DNA of 64,000 nucleotides from the sequence record KX397373.1; one strand, written 5' to 3'. Below the pieces are notes generated by a model. The model saw nothing but the letters and a program-made list of their open reading frames with translations, was not told the DNA's origin and did no database searches. Below are positions 4,047 through 34,916 of this stretch, one piece after another. Each line of letters opens with the position of its first letter. Position 1 is the stretch's first letter. The translations under genes were made by a program, and so were the position numbers.

Positions 4047-4054
4047 GAGCAGTT

Positions 4055-4984: not shown

Positions 4985-4996
4985 TGGAGAACCACC

Positions 4997-15139: not shown

Positions 15140-15189
15140 AAAGAAAGCGACCTACTACCCGTAAAGGTAGTAGGTCTGCTTATTTTATT
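15138..15189. terminator. Bidirectional terminator ending the minus-strand rSAM/fibre gene run
   Basis: GACCTACTACC / GGTAGTAGGTC stem with A-run to the left and T-run to the right. Confidence 0.85.
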
Positions 15190-15192
15190 CGC

Positions 15193-15861
15193 TTACAACA
15201 AGCCTTCTTCGGTCGCCACGGATTTGATACCCGTGAAGTCCTGTGCTTCGGCCAGTGTGCGAATCTTACGCTTGAGCTCCGTCATCGCTGCGTGCAGTTG
15301 CGCATCACGCTCAACAATAGCGGCCAGCACCGCTTTACACGCTGCAACGTCGAACGGGTGTTCTTCACTGCCTAAGCGGTTGTTCTGCGCATCCAGCCAA
15401 TACCCCGGCGAGGTATCGGATTGAACGTACGAGGCCAAGGACGCACGAGACTTCTCATCGGCTTGCAGCAGGATGCCCTGGAATTCGATGTTCTCGTGAC
15501 GCTGAGTTTCGTAGCGTTCCGCGATACGGGTATAGATAGGCTGAATCTCTTGGTAGAGATAGTTTACCGTCGAGGTCAAGCCTTTGCGGATTTCATCCAA
15601 CGGCAGCTCTAACACGGTTTCGATAAACTCTTTCGCCTTACGCAGCGTGAACTGGGCTTCCGGTTCACTGAGGTCGTACTCACGCAGCTTTTTGACGGCT
15701 GCTTTATCCGATACCCCGTTCAACAGATGATAATGCAGCAGGGTACAGTACCCCTGCTTGGTTTCATCGTCTTTCGCCAGAATGGTCATGTAATTACCGT
15801 GGCGGTCAATCGGGTTACCGAATTCGAAGTAACGGGCCTTTATCTCGTCATTACTAAGCAT
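15193..15861 (-). CDS. DUF4376-like tail-fibre assembly protein with a possible PqqD/RRE-like N-terminal domain
   Basis: C-terminal half FQG..LQADEKSR.SL...W.DA.N.......AI..R......H.....LK..I resembles DUF4376. AGGAG RBS. Confidence 0.65.
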   Translation of the reverse strand: MLSNDEIKARYFEFGNPIDRHGNYMTILAKDDETKQGYCTLLHYHLLNGVSDKAAVKKLREYDLSEPEAQFTLRKAKEFIETVLELPLDEIRKGLTSTVNYLYQEIQPIYTRIAERYETQRHENIEFQGILLQADEKSRASLASYVQSDTSPGYWLDAQNNRLGSEEHPFDVAACKAVLAAIVERDAQLHAAMTELKRKIRTLAEAQDFTGIKSVATEEGLL

Positions 15862-16430
15862 TCAGATTCTCCTGCTAACCCGAGGTCCATCAGCAGGCCG
15901 AAGTCAACCATCTGGAAGTGTTCGGATAATTCCTCACCCCAGATAAATTTCATCTTCTCTGCTAAGTCCCCGTTCTGTTCCTGGAAGATAAAGATTTGGT
16001 GCATTTCCTCACCAAACGAGTCGAACTGATGGTTAGAACGCAGCGCACGTACGCGCACACCGATCAAATCCGCAGCTTCCGGATTCTCCGGGTCGGCCCA
16101 GTTTAATGCCAGACCAATCAGGTTATCGGTATCCAGGTTCTGCGTAGAGCGACGCAGGATTTCGATTTTGTGGCGCGGGAATTCCGCAACACGCTGTTCG
16201 AAGCCCGGATTACGGATGGCCACCTGCTCCACAGAGTTGTGTGTTTTCTCAACCCCGTCCAGCGGCAGAATGACGTTCAGCCCGAAGCGCACACACAGAC
16301 GACGAATCTCATCAGTAAACGTGTCTGGTTCCACAATCGCGTGGATGTTGTACATGCCGTGCTTTTGCATAAACGCGGCAACAAGGTGAAGATTACGCTT
16401 CGTAAAATTGTGTATCAGCAACGACTTCAT
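15840..16430 (-). CDS. Hypothetical protein in the rSAM cluster
   Basis: 196 aa, AGGAG RBS, overlaps both neighbours. Confidence 0.7.
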   Translation of the reverse strand: MKSLLIHNFTKRNLHLVAAFMQKHGMYNIHAIVEPDTFTDEIRRLCVRFGLNVILPLDGVEKTHNSVEQVAIRNPGFEQRVAEFPRHKIEILRRSTQNLDTDNLIGLALNWADPENPEAADLIGVRVRALRSNHQFDSFGEEMHQIFIFQEQNGDLAEKMKFIWGEELSEHFQMVDFGLLMDLGLAGESECLVMTR

Positions 16431-17736
16431 TCGCTGGTGCTCCTAATTGGTTTTTCTTCTCGGCTGCTAATTTGCGATCGCGCACACAAGACACACAGTA
16501 GCACTGGGTCTTATCGTTCAGATCGGTATAACGGGTAGTACCGGTTTTCTGGTAGAAGTATTCTGCTACCAGCAGTTTGGCGGTAGTCCAGCCACACTGA
16601 CGACGCTCGGCGTGATACGCTTTGCGGTCTTCCATTTCCCCGTCACCGTTCTCGTATGACGCCGCGGCACAACTACCACACGCGTGCTTCATCGGGCAAC
16701 CCAGGCACGTTTCTGGGTAGTTGGTGTACTGCGTTTGAATTTCGTTCAACAGCTTATTGTCGTCGATATTGACAATCTCACGGCCACGCAGTTCTGCGAT
16801 AGCCTGACGTGTCGTTACCGTGGACATAAAGCGGTTACAGCCGTAAATCTTGCGGTCGAAGCCCAGGCAGGTCATGTGGGTTACGGTACCGCAGAACGGA
16901 CGCACACGCTCCGGGTTCAGACGCGTTGCTTCGTCGTCCAGGAGCTTCTGACGCCAATCCGGGTCCCAGGTTGCCATGAAGTCCAGGCCATCCGGGAAGA
17001 TGTGGGTCAGGCGGTTACGTGGGTCTTTCTCAAACCCTTTGTCGAACCAGTAGTCAATCACGTCCATCATCTGCAACGCAATCGACATTGCCATGGTGCG
17101 CGGCAGAATGTCTTCGTACGTGACGTTACCGGAAATGGTACCACCGCCAGTGACGTCCATCAGGTGCTTCATGGACTCGGCGTATTTCGGCAGGGTCTCA
17201 GACGTAAAGGTGGCTTTGATACCCAGTTCCAGGATACCGACCGATTTCAGGTAGTTGTAACCACGCATCGCTTTTTCGTACGACCCTTCACGGGTCGTGG
17301 TGAAGATACGATAGCGGTCGTGCACTTCCGGCAGACCATCGATAGACACACCGATGGACAGTTTGTCACGCCAGCGTTCGATAATCTCGCGGTTCAGCGG
17401 CTTGTCGAATAACGTGCCGTTCGTCGAGATGGAGAAGATAACATCACGGTTATCACGCTTCGCCAGTTCTTCGGCCGTTTCAAATACGGCTTTCAGAATC
17501 TTCGGCTGCATCATGGGTTCACCACCGATGATATCGATGATAACTTCCACGTTCTTCAAATGACGGTCACGGTCGAAACACGCATGAATGAAGTCCACTG
17601 CATCATCGGCTTTATTGTTACGCGGGTATTTACGCTCGTAGCAATATTCACAGTCGAGGTTACAGGAGAGGTTGGTCACCACCTGATAGGTTTTGGTGAT
17701 TTTGGGCTCTTGGGCCGGTGCTTTGGTATCACGCAT
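16393..17736 (-). CDS. Radical SAM/SPASM-domain peptide maturase
   Basis: CNLDCEYC (CX3CX2C); IIGGEP; SISTNGTL; SIDG. SPASM-like cysteines: CGTV..C..DRKIYGCNRF and CLGCPMKHACGSCAA...C. Confidence 0.92.
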   Translation of the reverse strand: MRDTKAPAQEPKITKTYQVVTNLSCNLDCEYCYERKYPRNNKADDAVDFIHACFDRDRHLKNVEVIIDIIGGEPMMQPKILKAVFETAEELAKRDNRDVIFSISTNGTLFDKPLNREIIERWRDKLSIGVSIDGLPEVHDRYRIFTTTREGSYEKAMRGYNYLKSVGILELGIKATFTSETLPKYAESMKHLMDVTGGGTISGNVTYEDILPRTMAMSIALQMMDVIDYWFDKGFEKDPRNRLTHIFPDGLDFMATWDPDWRQKLLDDEATRLNPERVRPFCGTVTHMTCLGFDRKIYGCNRFMSTVTTRQAIAELRGREIVNIDDNKLLNEIQTQYTNYPETCLGCPMKHACGSCAAASYENGDGEMEDRKAYHAERRQCGWTTAKLLVAEYFYQKTGTTRYTDLNDKTQCYCVSCVRDRKLAAEKKNQLGAPANEVVADTQFYEA

Positions 17737-18634
17737 TGCGATTTAACCCCGCTTGTATTACACGATTCATGTACTGGTAAGCGTCATAGCCAATGACTTC
17801 GGCCAGACGGTTACAGCCCGAGTTCAACACATCAATGGCATTGTCAGACTGGTCAAACGTGGCATCGGATTTTACCCACACCAGATTGCTACAGTCGTCA
17901 CAGTGCTGCTTGAAGAACTTGTTGATGCTGAGCGTTTGGTGGAACCCGTTCAGCGTGTTCAGCTCGGTCAACTGGTCGTGCATTTTGTTGTACCCGTACA
18001 TAAAGTTCATGACGAGATCCTGGTTAAGCGGCTTAGGCATGAAGTTATCAAACATCACACGGTAACCGTTTAAGCGGTAATGGTACAACGACTCGTGGAG
18101 TTTCAACAGGTCGTAGAACCAGTGCTTCGGTGCTAACTGGGCACGGGTAATCACCGACCATAACGTGATGTTGTCCAGCGCGTCAAACACCTCGAAAGCA
18201 TCGTAGCGACGCTCCTCAGCGATACGCAGCAACGGACGTTCGGATTCTGCATAGCCGTCAAAGGAGACGAAGATGCGATCCATTTGCTCGAGCACCGGCA
18301 GCTGGGCCGGGGTCAGTCGCAGACCGTTGGTGTACATTTCATGCTGTAGGTGCGGATAACGTTCCTTCAACTCAGCCATAAAGTCCTGGATTTTATTGAA
18401 CGCCAACAGGGGTTCACCGCCCGTCCAGTTAATTTGCTGAATAGTAGGATGCGCTTCCAGCGTTTCAAACAGCTTCTCTCTTTGGATGTCGCGCGCACTG
18501 TCCTTGACATCCATATACCCAACACCGCCACAGAAGCTACAATCGAGATTGCACTTCGAGGTGGTGACAATCGACAGCTCCATCGGAGTTGACGAAGGGT
18601 CGCGACGAATAGCCGACACAGCTTCTTCACTCAT
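17729..18634 (-). CDS. Second, shorter radical SAM protein
   Basis: CNLDCSFC; WTGGEPLL; YTNG; VSFDG. Only CDDC..C at the C-terminus. GGAG RBS. Confidence 0.88.
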   Translation of the reverse strand: MSEEAVSAIRRDPSSTPMELSIVTTSKCNLDCSFCGGVGYMDVKDSARDIQREKLFETLEAHPTIQQINWTGGEPLLAFNKIQDFMAELKERYPHLQHEMYTNGLRLTPAQLPVLEQMDRIFVSFDGYAESERPLLRIAEERRYDAFEVFDALDNITLWSVITRAQLAPKHWFYDLLKLHESLYHYRLNGYRVMFDNFMPKPLNQDLVMNFMYGYNKMHDQLTELNTLNGFHQTLSINKFFKQHCDDCSNLVWVKSDATFDQSDNAIDVLNSGCNRLAEVIGYDAYQYMNRVIQAGLNRNA

Positions 18635-18650
18635 TGCAGATTTACTCCAG

Positions 18651-19538
18651 TTATTCGAAAGTCAGCTTGAACAGCGGGTCATCTTTGATGTCCACACCCG
18701 TCTTTAACACGAACGGGTCGTTATAAGCATCAAGGATCTGGTTCAGAATAGCCTGACGGTCATTCACACGCCGTAAGTCATCTAACGTGACCGTGCGAGC
18801 ATGGAAGGCAGACACTGCGGTTTTCTCTTCAGCCGTCAGTTCTACTTTCGTCAGCAGGAACGCTACCAGTTTGTTCAGGTCTGCTTCGGTTGCAGGTGCT
18901 TCACCGAACTGCGTCTGCACCAGGTACTGCATCCACGGTTTGCGGATACGCTTGGTGATGTCGTGTTCGTCAAAGATTGCTTCGAATTGTTTCTCAGCCG
19001 GGTTCCAGACAAACTTGTAGCTGTAGGCCAGCAGGTCAAGCATGTTGGTAATGCCGTGCTTTTCAAAGCCAACGATAGGGTAATACTCTTCGACACCGGT
19101 ATACTGCTCAGTGTCTTGCGTTACCTGCGTAAACCAGCCAGGCATAGACCCCATGTAGTCCCAGCTCCATTCACGGCGGGCCATCGGTTTCAGGCCACTT
19201 TCGGTAAACGGAATCAGGAACATTTCCAGGTCAACCACCTGGTTCAATACCGCATCGCTCAGGAAGTATTTCCCATCCACTAAGCGACCTTTCACATCTT
19301 GCTCACCGGCCGTGATGTGAATGTGCTGCACGCTACGACCCGCTAACGTATAATCGGCTTCCACCGTATAGTTCTTCGGGTTAGCCAGCTCACGTCCACG
19401 AACCTTTGGCCACTCCCCTGGCAACTGACTGATCAGTCGCACCTGGTCTAACAGGTGGAATTTCACACTGTCGTACAGGCTGATATGCAGTGGGAAGTTT
19501 TGCGTTGTCTTAAACGCAAGGTGTAGATCGTTCTTCAT
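18651..19538 (-). CDS. Hypothetical protein between the precursors and the rSAM genes
   Basis: 295 aa, AGGGG RBS, short gaps to neighbours. Confidence 0.75.
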   Translation of the reverse strand: MKNDLHLAFKTTQNFPLHISLYDSVKFHLLDQVRLISQLPGEWPKVRGRELANPKNYTVEADYTLAGRSVQHIHITAGEQDVKGRLVDGKYFLSDAVLNQVVDLEMFLIPFTESGLKPMARREWSWDYMGSMPGWFTQVTQDTEQYTGVEEYYPIVGFEKHGITNMLDLLAYSYKFVWNPAEKQFEAIFDEHDITKRIRKPWMQYLVQTQFGEAPATEADLNKLVAFLLTKVELTAEEKTAVSAFHARTVTLDDLRRVNDRQAILNQILDAYNDPFVLKTGVDIKDDPLFKLTFE

Positions 19539-19548
19539 TTAAGTCCCC

Positions 19549-19755
19549 TTATCGGTTCCCCGCTCCGTGACTACAACCACCGCTACATGTCCAGCTACAA
19601 GACCCGCCGCAGTTATAGTGCGATAACGGTAACCCAGCAAGGTTGTTAGTCGTACTAACCGTCCCCTGGGTTGCGATGAACGAGTTAGCGTCCGCCGTCT
19701 TGATATAGCCTTCCACTTGCACCATTTTGTCACGGATGTTTTTGAGTGAAATCAC
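19549..19755 (-). CDS. Short Cys-rich precursor-like peptide P3 (4 Cys)
   Basis: GTG start after GGGGG RBS. ISLKNIRDKM leader and HYNCGGSCSWTCSGGC core are homologous to P1 and P2. Confidence 0.8.
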   Translation of the reverse strand: MISLKNIRDKMVQVEGYIKTADANSFIATQGTVSTTNNLAGLPLSHYNCGGSCSWTCSGGCSHGAGNR

Positions 19756-19799
19756 ACTAACCCCCAAATTTGTAAAAAGTTAACTGGGAGACGAGGGCG

Positions 19800-20198
19800 T
19801 TACCGCGTTGGCCCGGAACAACCGGAACAACCAGAGCAGCTTGAGGAACATGAAGAAGAACAACCTGTTGAACACGTTCCTGAACAGCCGTTTGCACAGC
19901 CTCCTGAACATGCACCCGAACAGCCCGTACAGGTCGAAGAACAACCCGAAGTACAGCTGGACGAACAACTTGCCCCACACGTTCCCGACGCAGAACCTGA
20001 GCACCCGCCGGAACACGACGAACATGTCCAGCTACAGGTACCGCCACAATCATAATGCGCACGCGGCTGGCCGCCAAACAACGTCGAGTTGTTCGTGGCT
20101 TTATTGCGAATATAGGTCTGCACCCCTGCCGCGTTTTTCAATGCGGTATTATCAATACTATTCAGACGGTTCTGAATATCTTTTAGGTTGATAGCCAT
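19800..20198 (-). CDS. CX2-3-repeat precursor-like peptide P2 (132 aa, 20 Cys)
   Basis: AGGAG RBS, ATG 20198. MAINLKDIQNRL leader; HYDCGGTCSWTC then a Ser/Gly/Thr-Cys repeat. Confidence 0.88.
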   Translation of the reverse strand: MAINLKDIQNRLNSIDNTALKNAAGVQTYIRNKATNNSTLFGGQPRAHYDCGGTCSWTCSSCSGGCSGSASGTCGASCSSSCTSGCSSTCTGCSGACSGGCANGCSGTCSTGCSSSCSSSCSGCSGCSGPTR

Positions 20199-20209
20199 GA
20201 TGTCTCCTA

Positions 20210-20593
20210 CTACGGCCCAGAGCAGCCAGAACAGCCCGTACAGCTCGATGAGCACGACCCCGAGCACCCGCTACATTTACCGGAGCACCCGCCGGAGCAA
20301 CTGCCTGAACAACCTGAGCAACCCGAACACCCGGTAGAACAACCACCCGTACAGCTGCCGGTACACGTCGACGTACACGTTCCCGAACAACTGGTACAAC
20401 TTGCCGAACACCCGTTAGAGCACGACCAGCTACACGTACCACCACAATCTAATTGACCCGGTGTCCAACCCGCAAAGCGCTCTTGCGCGTTATACGCTTG
20501 CGAGGCAACTTGCGCATCAACGCGAGGTCCGGTGGCGACATTGGCTTCCACTATTTGCAGGCGGTCGCGTATGTTTTTAAGTGAGATTGCCAT
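20210..20593 (-). CDS. CX2-3-repeat precursor-like peptide P1 (127 aa, 21 Cys)
   Basis: AAGGA RBS. MAISLKNIRDRL leader; DCGGTCSWSC then a Ser/Gly/Thr-Cys repeat. Confidence 0.88.
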   Translation of the reverse strand: MAISLKNIRDRLQIVEANVATGPRVDAQVASQAYNAQERFAGWTPGQLDCGGTCSWSCSNGCSASCTSCSGTCTSTCTGSCTGGCSTGCSGCSGCSGSCSGGCSGKCSGCSGSCSSSCTGCSGCSGP

Positions 20594-20610
20594 ACGTTTC
20601 CTTTAAGAAT

Positions 20611-20644
20611 AAAAAAGAGGACACTGCCATAAAGACAGGTCCTC
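20611..20644 (-). terminator. Terminator-like hairpin between the fibre gene and the first precursor
   Basis: Minus strand GAGGAC-CTG...CAG-T-GTCCTC followed by TTTTTT. Confidence 0.55.
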
Positions 20645-20659
20645 GTGTTTTTAAAAAGT

Positions 20660-21859
20660 TTAGCGTGTACCAGCTTCTGCTTGTACGTCGTCGCGAGTCG
20701 TGAGACTGTTGTTGACGTGAACCGCAGCTTGCACCACACCACCGTACGTCTTGTGGAGGTAGTTCGGGTGTGGGTTGTCCGCTGCAACGTGGTTCGCCAG
20801 GTTCTGGTTTGCCTGCGAGATAGCGTTGGTATTGTTCGTGATGCGGGTGTTCTGCGCGGTAATCTGGGCTTGCAGGTTATCAATCTTCTGTTGGAAGTCT
20901 TGACCTTGCGATTCCAAATCACCGACACGCTGCGTTAACGCGTTCAGGGCAGACTGCAAATCATTGACAGCTTTCTGCAACTGCAACACCAGGGAGTTGA
21001 GGTTCGCCAAGGCGAGCGACATCTTCTGGTAGTTCTGCGCCACGGTGTTCAGCTGGTCATTCCATGCCACCAGAGATTGCACCACTGCATCGATACGGGC
21101 TCCCAGTGCAGTATCGGCGGTTTTCAGTGAAGCAATTTCTTTTAAGGTGTCATCAATCTGCGTTTGAACCGCGGCAATCAGTGCACGAATCTCGGTTTCT
21201 GTCAGACCGTTGATCTGGTGAATATTGAGACTGTGGACGTTGCCTTGTGCATTAACGTGCGCATTCAACGCATCAAGGAAGTCTTGTTTCAGACCGTCGA
21301 TGATACCTTTGATTTGTTCGAGCTGTACCGCCGACCCGGAGTTAATCGCGTCTTTGATGCCCGACAGTACCGTGATGATAAACTCGAACCCGTAGATGTC
21401 ACCCACGTCTTTAAACGTAGGTGCTGACGGGAACGTATCCGGAACGTTACGCAAGTCTTTGAAATCAACCGTGCGGTCTTCCAGTTTCAGCTCTGCAATC
21501 GCCTGAGTAATGGCAACAACGTTTGCTGACTGTGGACCACCGATGACCTGAGCCGAGATAGTGATGTCGGTTGGAATAGCAGAGTTGGTGACCACCACCC
21601 CCATCAGGATTTCTTGGTTCTTGGTAAGCTTCTCGTACGCCGGGTGAGCGAAGATCAGCTCATAGTCCGTCCCACGTTTATAGAAGGTACCGGGTTTGTT
21701 CGTTGCAGCCAGACGAAACGACTCCGCGTAAAACGGCCCGTCTGGGAATGCAAAGGCCCGGTTAACCTTACCGGAACCTAACGTAACGCGTCGTGTGACT
21801 GCGTTCGACGTCAGTGTCCCCTTTAGGTCAAACGGGTACTGATATACAATAGCGGCCAT
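20660..21859 (-). CDS. Tail fibre/baseplate-associated protein with a long C-terminal coiled coil
   Basis: AAGGAG RBS, ATG 21859. YPFD..G N-terminus, GPFY, G.DY.L, DLRNVPDTFP, heptad region, H....NPH motif. Confidence 0.75.
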   Translation of the reverse strand: MAAIVYQYPFDLKGTLTSNAVTRRVTLGSGKVNRAFAFPDGPFYAESFRLAATNKPGTFYKRGTDYELIFAHPAYEKLTKNQEILMGVVVTNSAIPTDITISAQVIGGPQSANVVAITQAIAELKLEDRTVDFKDLRNVPDTFPSAPTFKDVGDIYGFEFIITVLSGIKDAINSGSAVQLEQIKGIIDGLKQDFLDALNAHVNAQGNVHSLNIHQINGLTETEIRALIAAVQTQIDDTLKEIASLKTADTALGARIDAVVQSLVAWNDQLNTVAQNYQKMSLALANLNSLVLQLQKAVNDLQSALNALTQRVGDLESQGQDFQQKIDNLQAQITAQNTRITNNTNAISQANQNLANHVAADNPHPNYLHKTYGGVVQAAVHVNNSLTTRDDVQAEAGTR

Positions 21860-21902
21860 AGCCAAACTCCTTTGATTGGGGCGTCCGTGCCCCACAGCGC
21901 TG

Positions 21903-24900
21903 TTAAGACTTGAACATAAGATTGACCTGAATCTCGTCCAAGTCAACCAGCGAGTTACCTCCAGCGTATTCACAGGCCACTGTCAGAGTCAGCGTTCCGG
22001 AATTGTAACTGGCAACAAACGGAGGGTTCAGCGCATCTTTCCCGGTGTTCAGTACCACCGCCGGTTCAGAAGGCAGATTCGGGATGACCAGCTCACGCGC
22101 TACCCGCACCACACCAAAGCTCGATGTCAAATCGCTCAATGCATACAGCATGAACGGGGTATCAACATCGGTCTGTCGGAAGACGGTGCCGGTACTGTCG
22201 TCCACCACCTGTATCGCCAACATCTTCGTCTTCAGTGTTTGATACTGAGCCGCGGTCAGTTGCGCAGACAAAGTGGCCACAAACTCCACCCCAGCCGGAA
22301 GTCCTGAGCCGGTGACATTCACGAGGTCAGGACCCGTTGCAAACGGTATCTCCGCAGCGGACGGATTCACCCCGGACGTCAGGCAATACCAGAACATCGG
22401 GATACCGTTCGGTACCGCGTAACGCAGGCTAATCTGGCGAGCCGGATCACCAATATTCCCCGGCACCGTAAAACGCAACCTGGCCACCGCCATGTAGGTT
22501 TCCCCGGCGACGTGCGGCACAGACTCAGCACCGATCCACTTCATGTTAAAACTGGCCGCGCGGGCATTGTCTGCCGTTACGGCGGCCGTCTCAACCGGAG
22601 GTTTCAACCAGAAGCGCTCAGAGACATTCACCAGGTCTTGCCACCGCGTGGCACCAAACCCGCTATAGCGTTTCTGGATAGGGAGCGCAGGACGAGTTTG
22701 TCGTGTAATCCCTTTGGACAGCTCTTGTCCATCGGCATACCCGGCAGTGCCCGAGCCCGGTGTCGCTAACGGCACTTTGCTCAGTTGCGCCATTGACCCG
22801 ATACGGGCTTCACGGGCAGCGGACACATCGTGACGGTTAGCGACCGCAGCGTGCTCTACCAACTGCTTGACGTTACCGAAACGTTTCACCTTATCAAACG
22901 TCGACAGGGTAATGCGTTCGCTGTCCGTCACAACCGTACCGATATACAGCTGGGTATCGCTGTCCGGTTCCTGTTGCTCCAGCAGGCGGTATTGCGGAAC
23001 CCCGTTGACCAGCGCAGCGTGCATGTAGAACGTGCGGTTCTGGTAGTTAGTTGGGTACAAGTCACGGATATCGGAACTGTATTCGCCCAACGTGTAGTAC
23101 GCTGAACCGAATCGCAGCAACTCCTGTTCCGTGATGTACAGCGCCCAACCTTCCGCAGTCTTCGTCCCGGCGAGGATGTTATCCTCAGGTGTCCCGGTAC
23201 GGAAATTGCGGACGGTGTTCTTGTAGACACTGGCGGCAAAGTACAACCCATTAAACAACCATTTGGTCATCCCGATATAACCGGTCTCTGGCATCACCAC
23301 AATGTCGACTTCATTCGAAGACGGGTTCATGGAAATGAGCGAGTTCGTCCAGCCCCCGAAAGTCGTATCACACGACAACAGGAAAGAACGCCAGCGACTG
23401 TCTCCAACCACCCCCATTCGGTACAACGCCCCCAGGAACAACACATAGCCGTCGTCACGCTGAATCAACTTCGAGTTGGTGTACTGGTCGTGTGCCAAAG
23501 AGATACCGGCATCCGGGTCGCGGTAGTTCTCGACCACCGGTGACAACATCGTGGTACCCAACTGCACGTTCCCGTTGGTCACCGACATCGGCAGTTTCCA
23601 CACCCAGGTAAAGGTGTGGGTTACCAGCCGACTGGTGTTGTCCCACATGCGCACAGACGCCATGGCGAATGCCGCATTTAACCCACCGACATCGAACACT
23701 TGCAGCTTGGTTAATGTTTGCACGACCAACTCGTCGTTCCACACCGGCACCGCTGCTGCAATCGCCGCATTCAATGCTGCCCAGGTCGCATCCGATACCG
23801 TGATACGATCTGCGGTAAAGGTGGACGTCCCGGTCACGGTCTTGTACGGGAAAGACCCTGCCTCGGTAATAACACGACCGTTGATGTACAGTTGGCCATC
23901 TTTCCAGATATTCGGCGAAGACAGCAAGGTTCGGTAGTCAGGGTCGGTCACCGCGATACGCGCATTGTCTGGCCCCCAGCCCGGATAGTCCGGGAAGTAG
24001 CGAGACGATTGGGTATAACGGAGCTGGATAACCTCTGCGGCCACATTGAGGTGTCGCATCAATACCGTGTTGGCAGTCCCACCGAGGTGGATAAGGCCAC
24101 GCATGTATTGCTGGTACACCGACCCTACTGCACCACCCACGGTGGCGTTTGCGGTTTCGATAAGCGTTGTGCTGCTACCGAGTAAATCGTACAAACTCGT
24201 GTTCGGTGCTGGACTGATACCGATACGTGGCGGGTTGTTTGAATAAACGTCACAGAAGGAGTTCATCAACAACCCTGAGGACAGGAAGACCCTGTTCGTC
24301 AGCGCCACACCTTTGTTACGGTTGGTCACCGAGGGCAGAGGCTGGGCATTTGGGAACTCAATCTTGTTCTCGGTTAATGCGATCGGGAAGATTTTGTTCT
24401 CAAGCGTCAATAACCAGTTCTCCGTGTTAAGGGAGAGTGATACCGACCAGGCATCTGTCCACTGTGCCGAGGTATTATCGGAGAAGTACCCGTGCATCTC
24501 TGCACGCAACCGCACCATGTTCACCTGTGAGGCTGAATAAAACGAAGGGAGGTAGTTAACCGCATTCCCGTTCGGCCAACGGGCTTTCCCCTCCGCGGTA
24601 CGGTAGGCCAGGAACTTGGTTGTGGCATCGTCGCCATAACCGCCTTCTTGTACAATCAGCGCCACGTCGCCGTCTTTGTCTGGGTAATTGAAATTAATTA
24701 CCGGGATAGTCGAACTGTTTTTACTGCGCAGTTCGCTCAGACTGATACTCCAACCGCCAACAGTAAAGCGGGTGTTGTTGACAATAGACATCAACACAAC
24801 CACACGACCTTTGGTCACCGTCACTGTCGAATACTGACGATAATCTTTAAAGGCGAGGGTACTGCCGTTCGACCGGACACAGTCGGGCAGAGTGATCTGG

Positions 24901-26933: not shown

Positions 26934-26952
26934 TGCAAAGACTCCTACTTTG

Positions 26953-26989
26953 AAATAAAACGGATACCCCACCCCGGAGGGTGGGGTTA
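26953..26989 (-). terminator. Terminator-like hairpin between fibre genes
   Basis: ACCCCACCC / GGGTGGGGT stem with a T-rich tail on the minus strand. Confidence 0.6.
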
Positions 26990-27023
26990 CCTACGGACGC
27001 AAAACGTCCGCAGACGTTCCGTC

Positions 27024-30000
27024 CTAAGAGGACCACTCACCTAATGCGTTACCTGCCGCAGTCTGCTCACGCTTCAGCTCAGACAACACCCACAGCCAGG
27101 CTGTAGAAGTGAGATGGAAGGGGTTACGCTTCTCAGCCACGTACTGCGGGCTGGCGCTACGTAACTCCCACGCAGAGTCCGGCGTCAGTGTGGTGATGGT
27201 CGCCCCACTGCTGTCCAACACGTTTAAACTGAACGACAAGTTCAAAGACTCACCATTCACAGTGTCCGCAGGTTTAAACCACAGGTACACTGCTTGCCCG
27301 GCACAGATAACCGTTGCATCAACGGCCGCCGACGGCGAACCTGACTGCGCGGCCCAACTACGACCACTGCCCCCATCCACGATACGCGACCCCAAGATAA
27401 TCCCACCGGCCATAACTGGCCCAGTGATATTCCCAGTAATCTTCGCAATCGCTTTCGCGGTTGCTTTATCAGGACGCCAACACAACATCACCGGTTCGCG
27501 GAACCGCATCGGGGTTTTACCAGCTGCCGTCGCTTTCGCCACTGTCCAGTTAACCGGAAGTTTCCCTGCCGGGTACAGTAATGAACCGCGCTCGGCCCGT
27601 GAGGCATGGAACGGTAACCCCAGTTGTCCACGGTGTGAGATTTCGGCATTGCCTTGCCCACACGGCACGGACACCCATTCAGTCAATTCCCAGTTCACCG
27701 GTTCCCCATACGTTGTCGGGTCAACGACCTTTAACACATACTCGGAATCACGAGTGTTGTCTGTACGCCGTTCGATATTGGTATCGACGTAGGCTTCAAA
27801 CAAGGGGCGCAGGAACTGGTATTTGTCCAAATCGATTGCAGGGACGTTCGGGTTCATTAAGGCATGGCCCACACGCAAACGTTCACTAGGGGCAAGACCA
27901 TTGAACAGCACACCCACACCGTCACCCAGGAAGTACGAGAGTAAATCAAACGGCAGTTTAATCTCGACTTGTTGTTCACGCACCCCAGTAAAGCCAGGCT
28001 GACCACACAGGACAGACATACGCAAAATACCGGTAGTGACGTTATAACGGTAACGTACTGCCCAACGTGGGGAATACGTGCCGGTGAACGGCGCATTGGT
28101 TCCCAGGTCGACGTAGTCCAGGCAATCACCGGTTGCAATGGTGGTATCGGAAAGTTTGGTCACGGTAATTCCGCGCGTCACTTCCGTCAAGCCAATAACT
28201 GGGATGTTGCCACTGTTACGTACGTCATTCGCTTCTTGCGTCGTACGACTCAAATACCCGTAATGGCACTTGAAGTCTTTCAACGAAATGCGCAACACCT
28301 TACTGCTGCCCGGCATGGCGTTCTTCGCCGCAATCAGCACCAGGTACGGTTCTTCGGCATGAGCAACCGCTGCTGCCGTGTTCGCCACGTCAATGGTCAG
28401 CGTCCCTTCAAACGTCGGAGCGTTATTCTCTTTCGGGTTGAATGGGGTGAACCAACACATCGGGTGGTTACCGAGGGTTTCGAACCAGGCCAAAATATCC
28501 GATGAACCGTTACCGGTGTGGTACCAGTCAATCATTCCGCGGGTACCGAAGTACATATTGCTGAACGTGTTGTTGGAGTTGTTCTTCGTGATAGCATGGT
28601 TGTACGGTTCCGGCTGCACTTTACCCAACATCTTAAACCTCGGGTTATCACTGAACGCCCAGTCACTGGCTTTGGAGCCGTGGGCTTTGCGTATCGCGAT
28701 ATGATCGGAGATTTCATCCGACGGCCCGAAGTCGAAGGTAGTATTAAAGGTAAGTGTGCTGGCGGCACCCGGACTGTTAGGCAAGTCAACGTACCCGATG
28801 AGACCGCGCTCGATATCCAAGTCTTGCGAGAGGATAGGTTCGGCACGGGAATACAACGAGGTGGTCAACATGTTCACGTACAGGTAATGACGCAGCCCGC
28901 CCGGTTTGGTCACAAACTCTTGCAGGTGCTCCAGACGTGTCTCTGTCCCGGACGTATACAACGGATAGATGTCATCGTAGATGTCGAACTGCAAGGCAGC
29001 GGCTTTCGCAGGGTCGTTACACTCTGCTTTAATCGCGATGCAGTGCTCCTCAACACCCAACGGTGGTTCAGCCACGACATACAGCGGTGAGTTCCCCGTC
29101 GCAACTTGTTCCCCGTTCAGGTACACGGTGATTTTACCGCCACCGGCGATGTACATCTTAAAGGCACCGGTTGCTGATTTCAAACGCATCTTGGCGAGCA
29201 CAGACACCACGGACAGATTCCCCATCCCGGTAGCCGACTTACCGATTTGCTTCCCTTGAATGGCGATTGGTGGTTGTTCCGTCATCCCGGTAAAGGTCAA
29301 CCCCGCGCCGGTATTGATAACCCCGGTACCCCAGGTGTCTTCCATCTGGTTATCCGGAGAGAACCAGTTGAACATCGGCGTCGTCTGCAAATCAATCGAC
29401 CCGGATACCACACCCTCTTTGCGTGTCCCGTCTTGCAGATAGAAATATTTCAAATCTGTGACAGACATGCGGTAGGTGTTGAGTGTCCAGGTAGACGCAT
29501 TCACCGCGGTGAAGTCTGTGACGGTACCAGACTTCGCATTGGCAAGGGCGGCTGCCACCACCGCTAAGCGGTCAGACAACGCTTTCAACACCGACGGAGT
29601 CACGCCACGACCCGCAGCCAATCCAGCTTGGTTCTTGGAATAACGCCCAATCCCCTGGAGCTGTTGTGAGGCTTCGTAGATGTTCAGTTCCGACCAGTCA
29701 TGGTGGTGCCCGGTCGGGCTGAGGTCTGTAAGCGCTTCACTGAGGTCATCAGACAGCGGTTTGTCGGCATCGGGGATGTTGTTCGCATTCCCCAGTCCCA
29801 GGTCGGTCTTGGTCAGCGTACGACTACCATCGTCCATTGCTTTGTTGTTCAGCAAAGTCGATTTCAGCACGTACCCGCCCATGTCCGCTTCGTATCCCGT
29901 CAGTGAGTCAGGCGTTGCCGCCACTCCCGAGGTTTCTGTCCCTGGCCCTTTCTTCAGTTTGACCACACCTTTAACAGTAGTGGTCGCGTTCTGCGGCGTG

Positions 30001-31193
30001 ACGGTGCCAGTGACCGGGTCGACTTTCGACCCTTTGCCCGTAAAGTTAATCCCGTTACGTCCTTCGATGTACACCTTGGTGTCGTCCGGGTCGGACGTTC
30101 CGCCACCGTCGTTCGGGTCTTGTTGGTACTCCATCAGTGCCGTGGTGGTCAGCAGTGTCACCCCGTTAAGGGTGAGTTTGTCCATGCCCAACGCTGAACC
30201 CGTAGATTCGATGCGTAAAGTGTTGGTGCCTGCTTTCCATTCCATAAACCGTACAGTGCTGTCGCCCGAAACATACCCGGCGGCCAGAATAATCGAGCCG
30301 TTCGATTTCAGAGTAAAAGCATCGGTGGAGAACACAATCTCAGACTCACCCCCAGGCGAACGGAACAATGCCCGCGTCCCTGAGATGGTGGCATTGAAGA
30401 CACCCTTGGCATCTTTCGATACCCACTTCGAGATGTACTTATCAATGTCAGCCTGTTGCAACCCCAACGCGCGAATCTCACTGGTGAGCTGACGGAGTTT
30501 CTTTCCGTAAGCCAGGAAGGTGTCCGGCGTTTTCAACGACACTGGGTGTGCGCCATTCTGCGCCACCGTGGTGCTGTGTGGGTTTTTCGCAGCAGTGTGT
30601 GCCGGGAAGTTAAACGTCACAATCTCGTTGGCCAGTCCCTGCACTTCGGCTTTCAATGCGGTAAGCTTATCGCGAATCAAATCGTTCGCCGCGCCCGCGT
30701 CGACTTCTACATCATGAACCGCAGAAGCCAGGTACTTCTTATTCAGCATATCCGCCCAGGAGGTGGCGGCTGGGGTGGCCGGATACAATGAAGGTCGGTT
30801 AGCCAGTAGCAGGAAGTCCGCACTGGTCGGGTTGTTGATGTACTTAATCAATTCATCGAGAATCTCAACGAATGCATCGTAGAACGTACCCCCGAGCATT
30901 TGCCCTTCAAAGGACACCAAACCTTTGATTGTAGGGTTAATCAGGTGCACCCCACAAAACACTGGGGTCGTTACCGAGTCGTCCAGCGCTGTTAGCGCAT
31001 ACTCCAGTTCGTAATCCACCCCGCGGGTCAGCGGGTTAGACGAACCAGGTTGGCGAACCACCAACCCGTCGAAGAACGGGGAGTGGTCTAAGACCACCAC
31101 CCGGTCGTTGGAGTTATCGGACTCGATGATACGTTCCTCAGTGAAGTGATTCTCGGTATTAGTGCCCCGAGGATCGTAAGGATACGTTTTCAT
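27024..31193 (-). CDS. Large tail fibre protein (1389 aa)
   Basis: YPYDPRG N-terminus; ATTTVKGVVKL; DLGLGNANN..DADKPLS; HHHDWSEL. Confidence 0.8.
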   Translation of the reverse strand: MKTYPYDPRGTNTENHFTEERIIESDNSNDRVVVLDHSPFFDGLVVRQPGSSNPLTRGVDYELEYALTALDDSVTTPVFCGVHLINPTIKGLVSFEGQMLGGTFYDAFVEILDELIKYINNPTSADFLLLANRPSLYPATPAATSWADMLNKKYLASAVHDVEVDAGAANDLIRDKLTALKAEVQGLANEIVTFNFPAHTAAKNPHSTTVAQNGAHPVSLKTPDTFLAYGKKLRQLTSEIRALGLQQADIDKYISKWVSKDAKGVFNATISGTRALFRSPGGESEIVFSTDAFTLKSNGSIILAAGYVSGDSTVRFMEWKAGTNTLRIESTGSALGMDKLTLNGVTLLTTTALMEYQQDPNDGGGTSDPDDTKVYIEGRNGINFTGKGSKVDPVTGTVTPQNATTTVKGVVKLKKGPGTETSGVAATPDSLTGYEADMGGYVLKSTLLNNKAMDDGSRTLTKTDLGLGNANNIPDADKPLSDDLSEALTDLSPTGHHHDWSELNIYEASQQLQGIGRYSKNQAGLAAGRGVTPSVLKALSDRLAVVAAALANAKSGTVTDFTAVNASTWTLNTYRMSVTDLKYFYLQDGTRKEGVVSGSIDLQTTPMFNWFSPDNQMEDTWGTGVINTGAGLTFTGMTEQPPIAIQGKQIGKSATGMGNLSVVSVLAKMRLKSATGAFKMYIAGGGKITVYLNGEQVATGNSPLYVVAEPPLGVEEHCIAIKAECNDPAKAAALQFDIYDDIYPLYTSGTETRLEHLQEFVTKPGGLRHYLYVNMLTTSLYSRAEPILSQDLDIERGLIGYVDLPNSPGAASTLTFNTTFDFGPSDEISDHIAIRKAHGSKASDWAFSDNPRFKMLGKVQPEPYNHAITKNNSNNTFSNMYFGTRGMIDWYHTGNGSSDILAWFETLGNHPMCWFTPFNPKENNAPTFEGTLTIDVANTAAAVAHAEEPYLVLIAAKNAMPGSSKVLRISLKDFKCHYGYLSRTTQEANDVRNSGNIPVIGLTEVTRGITVTKLSDTTIATGDCLDYVDLGTNAPFTGTYSPRWAVRYRYNVTTGILRMSVLCGQPGFTGVREQQVEIKLPFDLLSYFLGDGVGVLFNGLAPSERLRVGHALMNPNVPAIDLDKYQFLRPLFEAYVDTNIERRTDNTRDSEYVLKVVDPTTYGEPVNWELTEWVSVPCGQGNAEISHRGQLGLPFHASRAERGSLLYPAGKLPVNWTVAKATAAGKTPMRFREPVMLCWRPDKATAKAIAKITGNITGPVMAGGIILGSRIVDGGSGRSWAAQSGSPSAAVDATVICAGQAVYLWFKPADTVNGESLNLSFSLNVLDSSGATITTLTPDSAWELRSASPQYVAEKRNPFHLTSTAWLWVLSELKREQTAAGNALGEWSS

Positions 31194-31205
31194 TCAGAGT
31201 TCTCC

Positions 31206-34200
31206 TTAATCGCGGAAAATCGCCGCACGAGCTAAATTGTTTTGACAGTACGCAATCACACGTTCTTCATTAACCTGCGTCGGGATAGGCAACACGTTCA
31301 CGTTCTGAACCAATGTCCGTTCCGCATCTGCGATGGTCATGGCCAGCGTTTCGAGCGTGCTGTCGCCCCCAACATAATTGAACTCCAGGAAACGGGCGCG
31401 GTTTAACACCGAGAAGTTTGCCAGGTAGTCCAGGAAGGTTGCGTTAAAGAACCGGGTGTAGGTCGTGTCAGCCGGGTGCGTCACGGTGGCGCGTGTAGAC
31501 GCGTTGAACAACCCACCCAGTCCTTGGTAAACCGGGGTCGTCGGTTCTTTCCACAGCGCGCTGATGTCAAGGTAATCCGGACGGATACGGTTTGACAAAT
31601 CGATGGTTTGGGTAGTTCCCGCTGCACGAGCGGTACACTTCACCGTCTTCACCGCTTCACCCAGGGTTAACACAATGTCGTACACCAGACTTGCCATCGT
31701 CAGCACGCAAGTGATGGTCAGGGTACCGTCAGTGGCCCGTGAGTTGCTAAAGGTTAATGACGGTGACAGCTCCGTCCAGGCAGGTGCAGGGGACGCAACA
31801 CGCATGGGGGTAAAGCCGATGACCACGTTACGCCCTGCACCAAAGTTGATACCGAGACCGGCATAACAGAACAGACCGTTACTGTCGGCAATACGGGTAC
31901 CTCGGCTCATCAGGATGGAGACACGATTAAAGAAGTTGTCTTTATCGTGCCAGCCTGCAACGATGGATTCGAGCAGCGTGTTATAGCTCTGGTCGGCGAG
32001 TGCCCAGCTGTGGGTGATCCCTGCGTTGCGATACAGCGGGAACGTGTGGTGGATAAAGCGATAATCGTTCATCGTCACACCCGCAGGGTCAAACTCCCAA
32101 CGGCTCGTCTGGCTATCGTACAACATCCCCGACATCGGCCAATACTGGTCAACCAACCCCATACGCCAATCGGCTTCACCACGCGAGGCATTCGGTACAC
32201 CCGAAGACCAACACGGGCCACCTTTCCCGTAACCTAACGTATACCCGAAGTCTGCCATTGACATCGTCCGACGGATGTGGGCGTTGTCATTAGCCTTATG
32301 CTCCTCCAGTTCACGGTAATCACCGAGACGAGTCACGTTGTGAATCTCAGCAATCTCGATACCGTCCTCAGACGTATCAATCGTACCGACCTTCGTCATC
32401 GTGTCCGTTTCAGCCGTGTCTGGGTTGGCCAGGATATAGTATTTCGCGGCCCCGTCAGCAATATCGACAAAGATACCAAAGGTGGTGTCTTCGTACGCGT
32501 CCGGGAAAGCCTCGGTTAAGTTCACGGTGGTAAGGGGAGCTTTGTACAGCTGACCCACGAAGTAGTTCTCTTCCGCCAGGGTGACCATCCAACCGGTGAC
32601 CGTAGCCCCGTTTTGAATGATGTTACTGCCCGGCACCCCAAAGCGCAGGATATTGACAGAAGCGGCAGAGTCTACCCCTTTGGCCGTGGCTTCCAGCGTC
32701 CCAATACGGGTAGTCTGGTCAATCACCACCGAACCATCCAGTGCCAGTGTCGCATTGTCGACGGCTAAACCGTACTGAATCAACCCGAACTGGGTAGCCG
32801 TGGCGGCCTTCACACCGAAGACAGCCGCAGCGTGGGTGTGACCGACTACCGCATATTTCGCCATCTCCGCACTCTGAAGCGTCGAAACCGGCAAGTCCAC
32901 ATCCGCGGTGTTCACCACCTTATCCAGGTTAAAGGTTAACTTGTCGATAAACACAGAGCTGGTTAACGGCAGGTCATTGATGTACGCCTTCACTTTCTCG
33001 AGCTTACCGGTGAACATCGCATCGAGTTTAGCAATCAACGCCGGGGTGGCTGCCAGGTCTTCCGCAGTACCGAAGTCGTTGGCCAGTGAACGCATGGCCA
33101 GGATGTTGACATCGGCAGAGGTCGGTGGCACGAAAGTACAGATAAAGGGTACAGACTGTATCCCGTTCCCGTTGATGGTCACCGTTGCGGTATTCGTCCC
33201 GTAGAACAACCCATCATTACCACCGCCTGTTACACCCGGCAAATACGGCCCTACCGTGGTTGGGTCGAGTAACTTCTTCCCGTTCCAGAGTAAGCCGCGG
33301 CTATCCGGGTAGAGAATCAGTTGGTTCGCCCCCGACTGGAAAGTGATCGGGTTGTTGCCCGCATTCACGGTCTGCGAATCACGACCCAGGAAACGAATGA
33401 CTTTCGGGTCAACCGTAAACTGTGCCCCAACACCACCCGTTTCTGTTGCTCCGGTAACAGACGTCACGGAGGTCAGACCCGGTTTGGTACCGAACGTACC
33501 GTTGATAGCCTGCGGGTTAGCCGAATTACGCAACAGTTTGTTGGCGAGGTTACTGAGTTTCGGCAACAGGTTATTGATGTAGTCGGCTAATTGGGCCTGG
33601 GTACGTCCGTAGACGAGCGTGGCATCCGAGGCAATACCATTTAACTCCAATGCACGAATTGCGCCCCAGGAGTCGTTGTGTGGGTTATCCTTGCGGGGAA
33701 CGTGGGCGTGGGCTGGTGCGTCGTCGTAGAGCTTACGCACAATCGCGTGATACTCTTTTAACAACGTCAGTACATCGCTACCGTCGGGCACGGTCATGCC
33801 AGGGAAAACAGCGTGACGCCAACTGTCACCTTTCACCACCGTAAACACCGTACGGACATCCGTACCCCGATGCAGAATAGCCAGCGTGTTGTTGGCTGCC
33901 ATCGGGGCCACTAACGCCGCCGGTGGGTTACGAAGGTCGAGGAGGAAGTCCATCTTCTTCGCGCCGTTCGCATCCGAAACAATACAGTGCACCGTGTCGA
34001 GGTCGTAGTTACGATCCCACTGCACCCGGAACTTCCCAGCCATAAACGATTTCGGGGCGGCGAAGCTGGCTACCGGGTATGCCGTGTTAGCGATGGTCAC
34101 ATTCAGTGACATCACAAGCGTCGTGCTGTCCCAGGCCAAGCCGATGTTCTGATATGGGCTTGCCCATGACGCCAGAATCAACTGACCCCAGGTCTTCGCG

Positions 34201-34916
34201 TTGGCGTTGGTGGCATAACCCGGCATGGTGTACGTGGTATCGTACTGGAAGTTCTTCAGCAAATAATCGTTAGACGAATGGTACACCTGGATGCTGCCAG
34301 CACTCTTGGCTTTATATCCCCCCTGCTGATCGTAATCAACCAACGACCGGCCGTTACTCATGAAGATGTCAGGGAACACCGGAGCATAGATGTTATTCAG
34401 ATACGGGTCTGGAATCGGTGGTGGGGTACCAATCTTTTTACCGATGGCCGCAATCGCTTCCATTAATTCCAGCTCACCCCGCCAGTTCTCACGGTCGAAC
34501 TGAATATCCACCGGTGGGAAGTAAACGTCACCAATAACCTCTTCCCACTGGCACAGACTTGGGAACTTGCCCGCATTCGCGGTACGCTCCGCGGTAATCT
34601 GTGCCTGGGTGGCAATGCCGTTACCAACCGCGTGGTAATCGACTGTGAAGTCTTTGTAATACTTAGGGTTTGTTACCCAAATCATCCCGTGTGACACGTA
34701 GCCTGTGCGCAACATAGCCATCATGTACGGGTGAGTGATAACGTAGTCATCGCCTAAGGTTAAAACTTTGCCGCCGCTCTTGACCACCAGGGATGTGGTG
34801 TAAAAAGGGGCGTACGCGGGAACGAGCATCTTGTACGTCGTACCAATCAGCGTCACCGCTTCACCGGTCTGCATGTTCCCCGGTTCTTTGAAGTGTGGGT
34901 CTAAGACGACAGCCAT
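31206..34916 (-). CDS. Large tail fibre protein (1236 aa)
   Basis: APFY, LG.DY, WEEVIG N-terminal domain; ATATQFGLIQ; LDKVVNTAD.D.PVS; HTH. Confidence 0.8.
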   Translation of the reverse strand: MAVVLDPHFKEPGNMQTGEAVTLIGTTYKMLVPAYAPFYTTSLVVKSGGKVLTLGDDYVITHPYMMAMLRTGYVSHGMIWVTNPKYYKDFTVDYHAVGNGIATQAQITAERTANAGKFPSLCQWEEVIGDVYFPPVDIQFDRENWRGELELMEAIAAIGKKIGTPPPIPDPYLNNIYAPVFPDIFMSNGRSLVDYDQQGGYKAKSAGSIQVYHSSNDYLLKNFQYDTTYTMPGYATNANAKTWGQLILASWASPYQNIGLAWDSTTLVMSLNVTIANTAYPVASFAAPKSFMAGKFRVQWDRNYDLDTVHCIVSDANGAKKMDFLLDLRNPPAALVAPMAANNTLAILHRGTDVRTVFTVVKGDSWRHAVFPGMTVPDGSDVLTLLKEYHAIVRKLYDDAPAHAHVPRKDNPHNDSWGAIRALELNGIASDATLVYGRTQAQLADYINNLLPKLSNLANKLLRNSANPQAINGTFGTKPGLTSVTSVTGATETGGVGAQFTVDPKVIRFLGRDSQTVNAGNNPITFQSGANQLILYPDSRGLLWNGKKLLDPTTVGPYLPGVTGGGNDGLFYGTNTATVTINGNGIQSVPFICTFVPPTSADVNILAMRSLANDFGTAEDLAATPALIAKLDAMFTGKLEKVKAYINDLPLTSSVFIDKLTFNLDKVVNTADVDLPVSTLQSAEMAKYAVVGHTHAAAVFGVKAATATQFGLIQYGLAVDNATLALDGSVVIDQTTRIGTLEATAKGVDSAASVNILRFGVPGSNIIQNGATVTGWMVTLAEENYFVGQLYKAPLTTVNLTEAFPDAYEDTTFGIFVDIADGAAKYYILANPDTAETDTMTKVGTIDTSEDGIEIAEIHNVTRLGDYRELEEHKANDNAHIRRTMSMADFGYTLGYGKGGPCWSSGVPNASRGEADWRMGLVDQYWPMSGMLYDSQTSRWEFDPAGVTMNDYRFIHHTFPLYRNAGITHSWALADQSYNTLLESIVAGWHDKDNFFNRVSILMSRGTRIADSNGLFCYAGLGINFGAGRNVVIGFTPMRVASPAPAWTELSPSLTFSNSRATDGTLTITCVLTMASLVYDIVLTLGEAVKTVKCTARAAGTTQTIDLSNRIRPDYLDISALWKEPTTPVYQGLGGLFNASTRATVTHPADTTYTRFFNATFLDYLANFSVLNRARFLEFNYVGGDSTLETLAMTIADAERTLVQNVNVLPIPTQVNEERVIAYCQNNLARAAIFRD

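Follow-up and report, generated by a model that had tools for sequence, protein, structure and literature searches.

A radical-SAM cassette in the tail-fibre module of Erwinia phage vB_EamM_Stratton and a proposed enzymatic maturation of phage fibres

The fibre module and its Cys-rich proteins

The DNA analysed here is a window of 64,000 nucleotides from the genome of Erwinia phage vB_EamM_Stratton (KX397373.1, 100% identical; window position = record position - 124000), an SPN3US-like jumbo phage of the genus Erskinevirus. Positions 15193-34916 of the window form a single minus-strand block, transcribed in the order gp189, gp188, gp187, gp186, P1, P2, P3, gp182, gp181, gp180, gp179 and gp178, in which P1-P3 are small Cys-rich proteins and gp181 and gp180 are enzymes of the radical S-adenosylmethionine (radical-SAM) class. 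Comparison of sequences indicates that the block is probably one module for the synthesis and assembly of tail fibres, in which P1-P3 would be fibre-type structural proteins and not precursors of diffusible peptides. The features are listed below in the order of transcription.

31206-34916, minus strand: gp189, fibre/baseplate paralogue of 1236 residues; phrog_7557 over the full length and, at the N-terminus, the shared phrog_2163 domain; orthologue of SPN3US gp170
27024-31193, minus strand: gp188, fibre/baseplate paralogue of 1389 residues; phrog_8078 over the full length; orthologue of SPN3US gp169
26966-26987, minus strand: G+C-rich hairpin at the gp188/gp187 junction; 9 pairs, 7 of them G-C, then a T-containing tail
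21903-26972, minus strand: gp187, fibre/baseplate paralogue of 1689 residues as annotated; phrog_7449 from residue 14; orthologue of SPN3US gp168
20660-21859, minus strand: gp186, tail protein of 399 residues with a long coiled-coil half; phrog_2163; orthologue of SPN3US gp167
20611-20644, minus strand: stem-loop (20617-20644) and T-run (20611-20616) just 5' of the P1 ribosome-binding site
20210-20593, minus strand: P1 (gp185), 127 residues; N-terminal segment of 49 residues (20447-20593) and Cys-rich domain of 78 residues (20213-20446); phrog_6085, 1.3e-48
19800-20198, minus strand: P2 (gp184), 132 residues from the probable start ATG 20198; N-terminal segment of 50 residues and Cys-rich domain of 82 residues; phrog_6085, 1.1e-53
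19549-19755, minus strand: P3 (gp183), 68 residues; N-terminal segment of 48 residues and a short 4-Cys element; phrog_6085, 4.6e-27
18651-19538, minus strand: gp182, conserved accessory protein of 295 residues, fold without known match; AlphaFold2 (AF2) model with a predicted local distance difference test (pLDDT) value of 87.5
17729-18634, minus strand: gp181, small radical-SAM enzyme of 301 residues; PF04055, 7.9e-14
16393-17736, minus strand: gp180, radical-SAM/SPASM enzyme of 447 residues; cluster-motif Cys and seven auxiliary Cys
15840-16430, minus strand: gp179, conserved alpha/beta protein of 196 residues; AF2 model, pLDDT 85.6
15193-15861, minus strand: gp178, candidate Tfa-like fibre chaperone of 222 residues; C-terminal DUF4376 (PF14301, 3.2e-9, above the cut-off)
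15149-15176, bidirectional: terminator-like hairpin at the end of the operon; 11-12 pairs, with T-runs on both strands

P1, P2 and P3 are paralogues of one another. Each consists of an N-terminal segment of 48-50 residues and a Cys-rich domain, which is composed nearly wholly of Cys, Gly, Ser and Thr and opens in all three proteins with a Cys-x3-Cys-Ser-Trp element. Spacings of four residues account for 14 of the 20 intervals between the 21 Cys of P1, for 14 of the 19 between the 20 Cys of P2 and for all three between the four Cys of P3. The N-terminal segment contains a short amphipathic stretch followed by the Asn/Leu/Gly motif that is seen before the Cys domain in long fibres. An earlier sequence-only reading of the window had described a heptad-like pattern in this segment; the hydrophobic spacing is present and conserved, but it extends over only about two heptads. 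No Pfam family matched P1-P3, and the models for CXXX-repeat targets, with Cys at each fourth residue, matched neither P1 nor P3. P2 gave a weak match to the Cys-rich repeat of NCBIfam TIGR04114 (18.5 bits, under the cut-off of 20) and 16.8 bits against a second CXXX-repeat target model with a cut-off of 50.

The comparison with phage Asesino revealed 36 synonymous and 7 non-synonymous codon differences in P1, and 61 and 8, respectively, in P2, concentrated at third codon positions. On these sequence data P1-P3 are real genes, and P1 is under purifying selection. Orthologues of each of the three were found in all relatives examined, namely SPN3US, CR5, Asesino, Caitlin, Huxley, EarlPhillipIV, Kwan, Phobos and the uncultured SPN3US-like genome L018, a contig of 222.5 kb; the P3 orthologue has only two Cys in Derbicus/Wellington-type phages. 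The P3 orthologue of L018 (L018:6001-6633, 210 residues) carries, besides the usual 68-residue part, an extra domain of 149 residues. This extension, seen in a single contig in which an assembly error is possible, would fit a scaffold role better than a leader role.

Several gene calls at the locus appear to need correction. The start of P2 is probably ATG 20198 and not the annotated GTG 20267, which adds 23 codons reaching into P1; the orthologues begin at the ATG equivalent to 20198. Similarly, the true start of gp187 probably lies near 26933, since its PHROG match begins at residue 14. Over the DNA that encodes the Cys repeats, several reading frames stay open for long distances, on both strands. 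In SPN3US, the deposited gp166 (L002:13425-13760) is an out-of-frame open reading frame (ORF) over the Cys repeats; the real P2 orthologue lies in a different, overlapping frame, and annotation is missing for those of P1 and P3 (L002:12939-14000). In Asesino, Caitlin, Huxley, Kwan and Phobos (L004-L009, about 3900-5000), deposited 'hypothetical' ORFs overlap the Cys-repeat DNA or lie opposite to it. The Cys-rich genes are mis-called in most deposited genomes, and hence have been invisible to proteomics.

The Cys module in tail fibres and tail modules

A profile of P1-P3 was searched against 1.84 billion representative proteins and yielded 158 matches, the best 150 of which were used for the tallies below. 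Many of the matched proteins are 180-500 residues long. The opening element, Cys-x-Cys-Ser-Trp, is present in 58 of the best 150; N-terminal extensions of at least 70 residues precede the module in 42 of these 58 proteins, and the Cys run stops within 11 residues of the C-terminus in 49. The N-terminal parts belong to PHROG tail-fibre families in P0291 (phrog_5073, 6.5e-52), P0281 (phrog_1640, 3.7e-31) and the fibres of L041 (phrog_6722, 2.3e-40) and L045 (phrog_2631, 2.7e-32), and include collagen-like and podovirus-type N-termini. The C-terminal parts of these long fibres match phrog_6085, the same family as P1-P3, and one Cys-tailed fibre is weakly matched by PF27846. The Cys region is followed by further sequence in the L018 P3 orthologue, P0276 and P0236. 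Five very long proteins (P0181, P0196, P0206, P0216 and P0221; 1582-1785 residues with about 145-170 Cys) matched the profile in several stretches.

In the long fibres the match begins at profile positions 4-12. Therefore, the 'leader' of P1-P3 is homologous to the stretch linking fibre shaft and Cys domain, which argues against removal of the leader. The N-terminal segments of P1-P3 are thus probably kept, as far as homology can tell.

The gene neighbourhoods place the module in tails as well. Relatives of gp180 were found on 325 IMG/VR contigs, and 79 loci were retrieved. A same-strand ORF with a dense Cys run is present in 71 of these 79 viral loci, compared with 6 of 80 bacterial loci encoding more distant SPASM relatives; the latter, from representative genomes and with relatives of at most 30% identity, served as a control for the detection rule and were not counted as members. 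The order fibre paralogues-P1-P2-P3-gp182-two radical-SAM genes-gp179-DUF4376 gene is kept in SPN3US, CR5, Asesino, Caitlin, Huxley, EarlPhillipIV, Kwan, Phobos and L018, and in all 18 SPN3US-like IMG/VR loci. Among cultured phages the cassette is confined to the SPN3US-like group.

In all five informative contexts (L011, L013, L014, L015 and L017), the gene of a Cys-tailed fibre has a gp180 orthologue (31-39% identity, E 1e-59 to 1e-82) and a small radical-SAM gene beside it, and distant homologues of gp182 are present in four of them. The contexts comprise a lambda/gene transfer agent (GTA)-like tail module, a T7-like genome with the cassette at the tail-fibre position, a temperate phage that encodes an integrase and a repressor, a contig of 228 kb that carries a neck gene of the T4 gp13 type, and a short metagenomic contig. 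In the lambda/GTA-like tail module, the gp180 homologue (36% identity) follows a 258-residue Cys-tailed fibre-repeat protein and a gp182 homologue. This element has three consecutive radical-SAM genes (L011:8306-11134; 274, 301 and 377 residues), compared with two in the other contexts, and its tail module also encodes, beside the cassette, a 180-residue protein with a thrombospondin type 1 domain (L011:12876-13418; PF19030, 4.9e-13), which is unusual for a phage.

In Stratton, P1-P3 sit in a fibre/baseplate operon between gp186-189 and the gene of a DUF4376 protein. As the sequence-only reading had stated, the cluster directly follows four co-oriented fibre/baseplate genes and ends with a DUF4376-like fibre-assembly gene. 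The minus-strand paralogues gp186-189 have an N-terminal domain in common (phrog_2163), gp186 has coiled-coil-type matches over residues of about 220-360, and the four are orthologous to SPN3US gp167-170, which are virion proteins placed in the tail by mass spectrometry (PMC5105663, PMC5694885, PMC10052503). SPN3US gp168-170 form a paralogue family that has been compared to phiKZ gp131 at the baseplate periphery (PMC5105663, PMC5694885, PMC10052503), and SPN3US gp167 gave 880 peptide-spectrum matches in wild-type virions versus about 5 in tailless particles in the published virion proteome. The DUF4376 match of gp178 scores 37.6 bits against a Pfam cut-off of 25, and DUF4376 is the conserved part of Tfa-type tail-fibre chaperones (PMC7882524, PMC10579305).

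The SPN3US virion proteomes list gp167-173 and none of gp161-166. This absence is uninformative for P1-P3 because gp166 is called out of frame and the P1 and P3 orthologues are unannotated; the proteomes were therefore rejected as a test of their presence, the true ORFs being missing from the annotation. The SPN3US SPASM enzyme gp163 was detected in trace amounts and classed as non-virion in the published proteome, which is what an assembly enzyme would be expected to show.

A terminator-like hairpin between the fibre genes and P1 had been raised as a caveat on their co-transcription. The hairpin is real (stem 20617-20644, -19.5 kcal/mol, z -3.7 to -4.4; T-run 20611-20616), and so is a similar one at 26966-26987 between the fibre genes gp188 and gp187. 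All ten relatives examined have a hairpin at this site before P1, with differing stem sequences and an invariant TATG in the loop; a T-run follows it in only some of them. These results come from per-sequence folds, because RNAalifold on a MAFFT alignment of this hairpin gave no pairs, the stems being out of register. A sigma-70 promoter scan returned fewer sites than shuffled sequence and is uninformative, the phage having RNA polymerases of its own. The caveat carries little weight, as all ten relatives keep the hairpin upstream of P1 and a comparable one splits two fibre paralogues; therefore the hairpins give no argument that the block is functionally split. The relative expression of the genes or the stability of the transcripts may be tuned by them, and the one before P1 may act as a terminator, an RNA-stability element or a piece of a phage promoter. 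Directly after the fibre module, on the opposite strand, lie the tandem DUF7941 paralogues gp176 and gp177 (14026-14550 and 14633-15139), a pair that is also present in L018.

The radical-SAM enzymes and accessory proteins

The enzyme gp180 has a CX3CX2C radical-SAM motif (C25/C29/C32), which is present in all 12 aligned gp180 relatives. Its SPASM auxiliary Cys at positions 282, 300, 344, 347, 353, 356 and 381 are invariant in the 12 sequences, which come from several phage lineages. The best matching PDB chain is the SCIFF maturase CteB (5WGG, 8.8e-14), with an alignment that begins at about CteB residue 103, past the CteB N-terminal domain. Among curated families, gp180 matched the PapB-type ranthipeptide maturases (NF047865, 1e-38; 133.4 bits versus a cut-off of 340), the CXXX-repeat maturases (TIGR04115, 7e-35; 121.2 bits versus 350) and the QhpD-type enzymes (TIGR03906; 65.6 bits versus 453), with weaker matches to cyclophane-forming and sulfatase-maturing families. 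The alignment to TIGR04115 runs end to end, with residues 16-375 on model positions 5-345 of 359. By analogy with CteB, PapB and QhpD-type enzymes, the nearest characterised ones although the scores are far below the cut-offs, the Cys domains probably carry thioether links.

The smaller enzyme gp181 also contains CX3CX2C (residues 28-35, C28/C32/C35). Compared with the seven-Cys SPASM set of gp180, it has only three C-terminal Cys (245, 248 and 274), which recur in its relatives. The small radical-SAM genes of SPN3US (gp164, L002:15030-15824) and CR5 (L003:15022-15801) are annotated without the N-terminal CX3CX2C, and for SPN3US gp164 an in-frame upstream extension holds the motif.

The AF2 model of gp182 has no PDB match below E = 0.1, and BFVD returned its own orthologue alone. 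The confident models of gp182 and gp179 matched no protease, winged-helix or RiPP (ribosomally synthesised and post-translationally modified peptide) recognition element (RRE) fold. Foldseek gave weak TIM-barrel-like and radical-SAM-core-like matches for gp179 (E 2e-3 to 2e-2, TM-score 0.3-0.43), while profile-profile comparison with radical-SAM alignments was not significant (probabilities 2.4% and 0.2%), and gp179 has no cluster cysteines. It could be a decayed radical-SAM paralogue.

The sequence-only reading had noted no ABC or C39 transporter, peptidase or immunity membrane protein in the cluster, and the wider scans agree with it. No exporter, peptidase, ABC family or membrane protein was found in the Pfam, NCBIfam and PHROG scans of the block or by AF2 fold comparison; no transmembrane-like window of 19 residues occurs from gp178 to gp188; and the annotation of the rest of the window lists none of these. 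No immunity gene was found beside P1-P3, and Pfam and PHROG scans of the module gave no Peptidase_S74 or other autoproteolytic domain. Neither a fused nor a separate RRE was found in gp180, which starts at the CteB catalytic domain, or in the models of gp182 and gp179, though a very divergent RRE is possible.

Proposed maturation of phage fibres

The system is most likely, judging from its sequence relationships, one of enzymatic maturation of phage fibres. Late in infection, gp180 and gp181 would modify the Cys-rich domain in the cytoplasm, with gp182 probably filling the substrate-handling role that an RRE domain has elsewhere. The modification would most likely consist of many Cys-to-carbon thioether links, resulting in a rigid, covalently stapled rod or knot, and the N-terminal segment of P1-P3 would remain attached. 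The Tfa-like gp178, perhaps together with gp179, would help to build the products into the gp186-189 fibre/baseplate apparatus. The sequence-only reading had likewise taken the peptides for structural parts of the virion. A fibre-associated role of P1-P3 gains support from the fusion of the Cys module to tail-fibre N-termini beside orthologues of both radical-SAM enzymes in unrelated phages. The comparison establishes the gene content, the cofactor motifs, the relationship of P1-P3 to the C-terminal modules of fibres and the joint occurrence of such fibres and both enzymes in several phage types, while the chemistry, incorporation into the virion, oligomeric state and docking partner of P1-P3 are inferred, as is the trimerising function that the earlier reading proposed for the N-terminal segment. 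That the conserved P1/P2/P3 trio forms a mixed trimer is speculation.

On balance, we lean towards a portable cassette, shared by jumbo myoviruses, T7-like podoviruses, lambda/GTA-like siphoviruses and temperate phages, in which two radical-SAM enzymes and a gp182-type protein would cross-link a domain with Cys at every fourth residue at the distal end of the fibre. In SPN3US-like phages the domain would be split into three small proteins, perhaps forming a mixed mini-fibre.

Several points weigh against the fibre-maturation proposal. The placement of P1-P3 in the virion is drawn from comparison and not from direct detection, and the stand-alone P1-P3 have no recognisable baseplate or fibre attachment domain. 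The chemistry is unreadable from homology, as gp180 lies far under the curated cut-offs of every characterised maturase family. All contexts of the cassette beyond the SPN3US-like phages are uncultured contigs. Phage fibres sometimes lose their C-terminal domains once assembled, in which case the Cys domain would end up outside the virion. In addition, short proteins, several paralogues and a SPASM maturase would also fit a classical RiPP, whose peptide would be freed by lysis without an exporter.

A classical RiPP of this kind would have the leaders of P1-P3 cut by a host or unrecognised protease and the cores freed at lysis, acting off the virion, for example as a signal or on rival bacteria or phages. 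The leader/core-like layout, the three small paralogues and a SPASM maturase nearest to the ranthipeptide and SCIFF families speak for it, and lysis makes the lack of an exporter no obstacle. However, protease, immunity gene and RRE were not found either in the searches described above, proteins with tail-fibre N-termini carry homologues of the module and its 'leader' at their C-terminal end, and the cassette lies within tail modules in every informative context; we consider this explanation quite unlikely. A role confined to assembly is unlikely too, in which the modified Cys domain would aid fibre folding or trimerisation as an intramolecular or trans chaperone and then be cleaved or left behind, absent from mature virions. 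The C-terminus of phage fibres is the usual site of removable chaperone domains, the Cys module occupies the extreme C-terminal position in most of the fused proteins, and a Tfa-like chaperone gene adjoins. Yet two dedicated radical-SAM enzymes would be costly for a discarded domain, the L018 P3 orthologue, P0276 and P0236 continue beyond the Cys region, and the module lacks a detectable autoproteolytic domain like Peptidase_S74.

The Cys density also resembles that of metal-binding proteins. Along the fibre axis, the period-4 Cys might hold metal ions or clusters, and the reaction of the radical-SAM enzymes might then be an epimerisation, a methylation, an oxidation of Cys or Ser, or a link at Trp, for which the invariant Trp after the second Cys and the weaker matches of gp180 to cyclophane-forming and sulfatase-maturing families could be cited. 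But nearly all residues between the Cys are Gly, Ser, Thr or Ala, partners such as His, Asp or Glu being absent, and the best family and structure matches of gp180 are thioether-forming enzymes, leaving a metal or redox domain quite improbable.

The proposed maturation of fibres shares parts with several known systems. Similar to the PapB family (NF047865) and CteB (5WGG), it combines a radical-SAM core and a seven-Cys SPASM region with a Cys-rich substrate of regular Cys spacing. It differs from them in the score of gp180 (133 bits versus 340), in the absence of an N-terminal RRE-type domain, in the additional small radical-SAM enzyme and gp182-type protein, and in substrates that are, or are homologous to, tail-fibre ends. 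The CXXX-repeat system of NCBIfam (TIGR04115; TIGR04114, TIGR04117; PF27846) shares the Cys at each fourth residue and the full-length alignment of gp180 to TIGR04115, whereas the scores are below the cut-offs (gp180, 121 versus 350; P2, 18.5 versus 20). In the literature searched, this family is defined in silico only and has no stated link to phage fibres. QhpD, also a SPASM radical-SAM enzyme, makes Cys thioether links in QhpC, which is retained as a subunit of a larger assembly, quinohemoprotein amine dehydrogenase. The likeness lies in a substrate that stays in its assembly and in TIGR03906 being among the family matches of gp180; QhpC is, however, an enzyme subunit with few links, whereas P1 and P2 have about 20 Cys each and are proposed virion parts. 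In Tfa/DUF4376 systems (TfaMu of Mu; gp27 of Alteromonas phage V22) the gene of a DUF4376 protein likewise ends the fibre module, but the known ones act by non-covalent chaperoning only, and the Stratton block adds enzymes predicted to act covalently. In the chainmail of the HK97 capsid, a phage structural protein is also covalently reinforced, there through autocatalytic isopeptide cross-links in the capsid, whereas in Stratton dedicated radical enzymes would act on fibre proteins.

Tail fibres determine which bacteria a phage attaches to, and their assembly is at present explained by self-folding, chaperones and autoproteolysis. The enzyme class and the Cys-x-x-x target family are already known; radical-SAM maturation of phage fibres, as suggested by these comparisons, would be new. 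No description of it was found in the full-text literature searched, and publication beyond that literature is possible. A pelagiphage study noted radical-SAM cassettes in host-recognition clusters and left them uninterpreted (PMC7029224). SPN3US, a cultured phage that carries the cassette and has existing proteomic data, provides a model. If the proposal is true, stapling of the fibre end by radical enzymes adds a post-translational chemistry to virion assembly and an enzyme-made, RiPP-like structural element to the host-recognition apparatus. It would give a function to a Cys-x-x-x radical-SAM target family known so far in silico only, and account for the radical-SAM cassettes in phage host-recognition regions (PMC7029224). 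RiPP-type machinery would then build structural materials besides secreted products.

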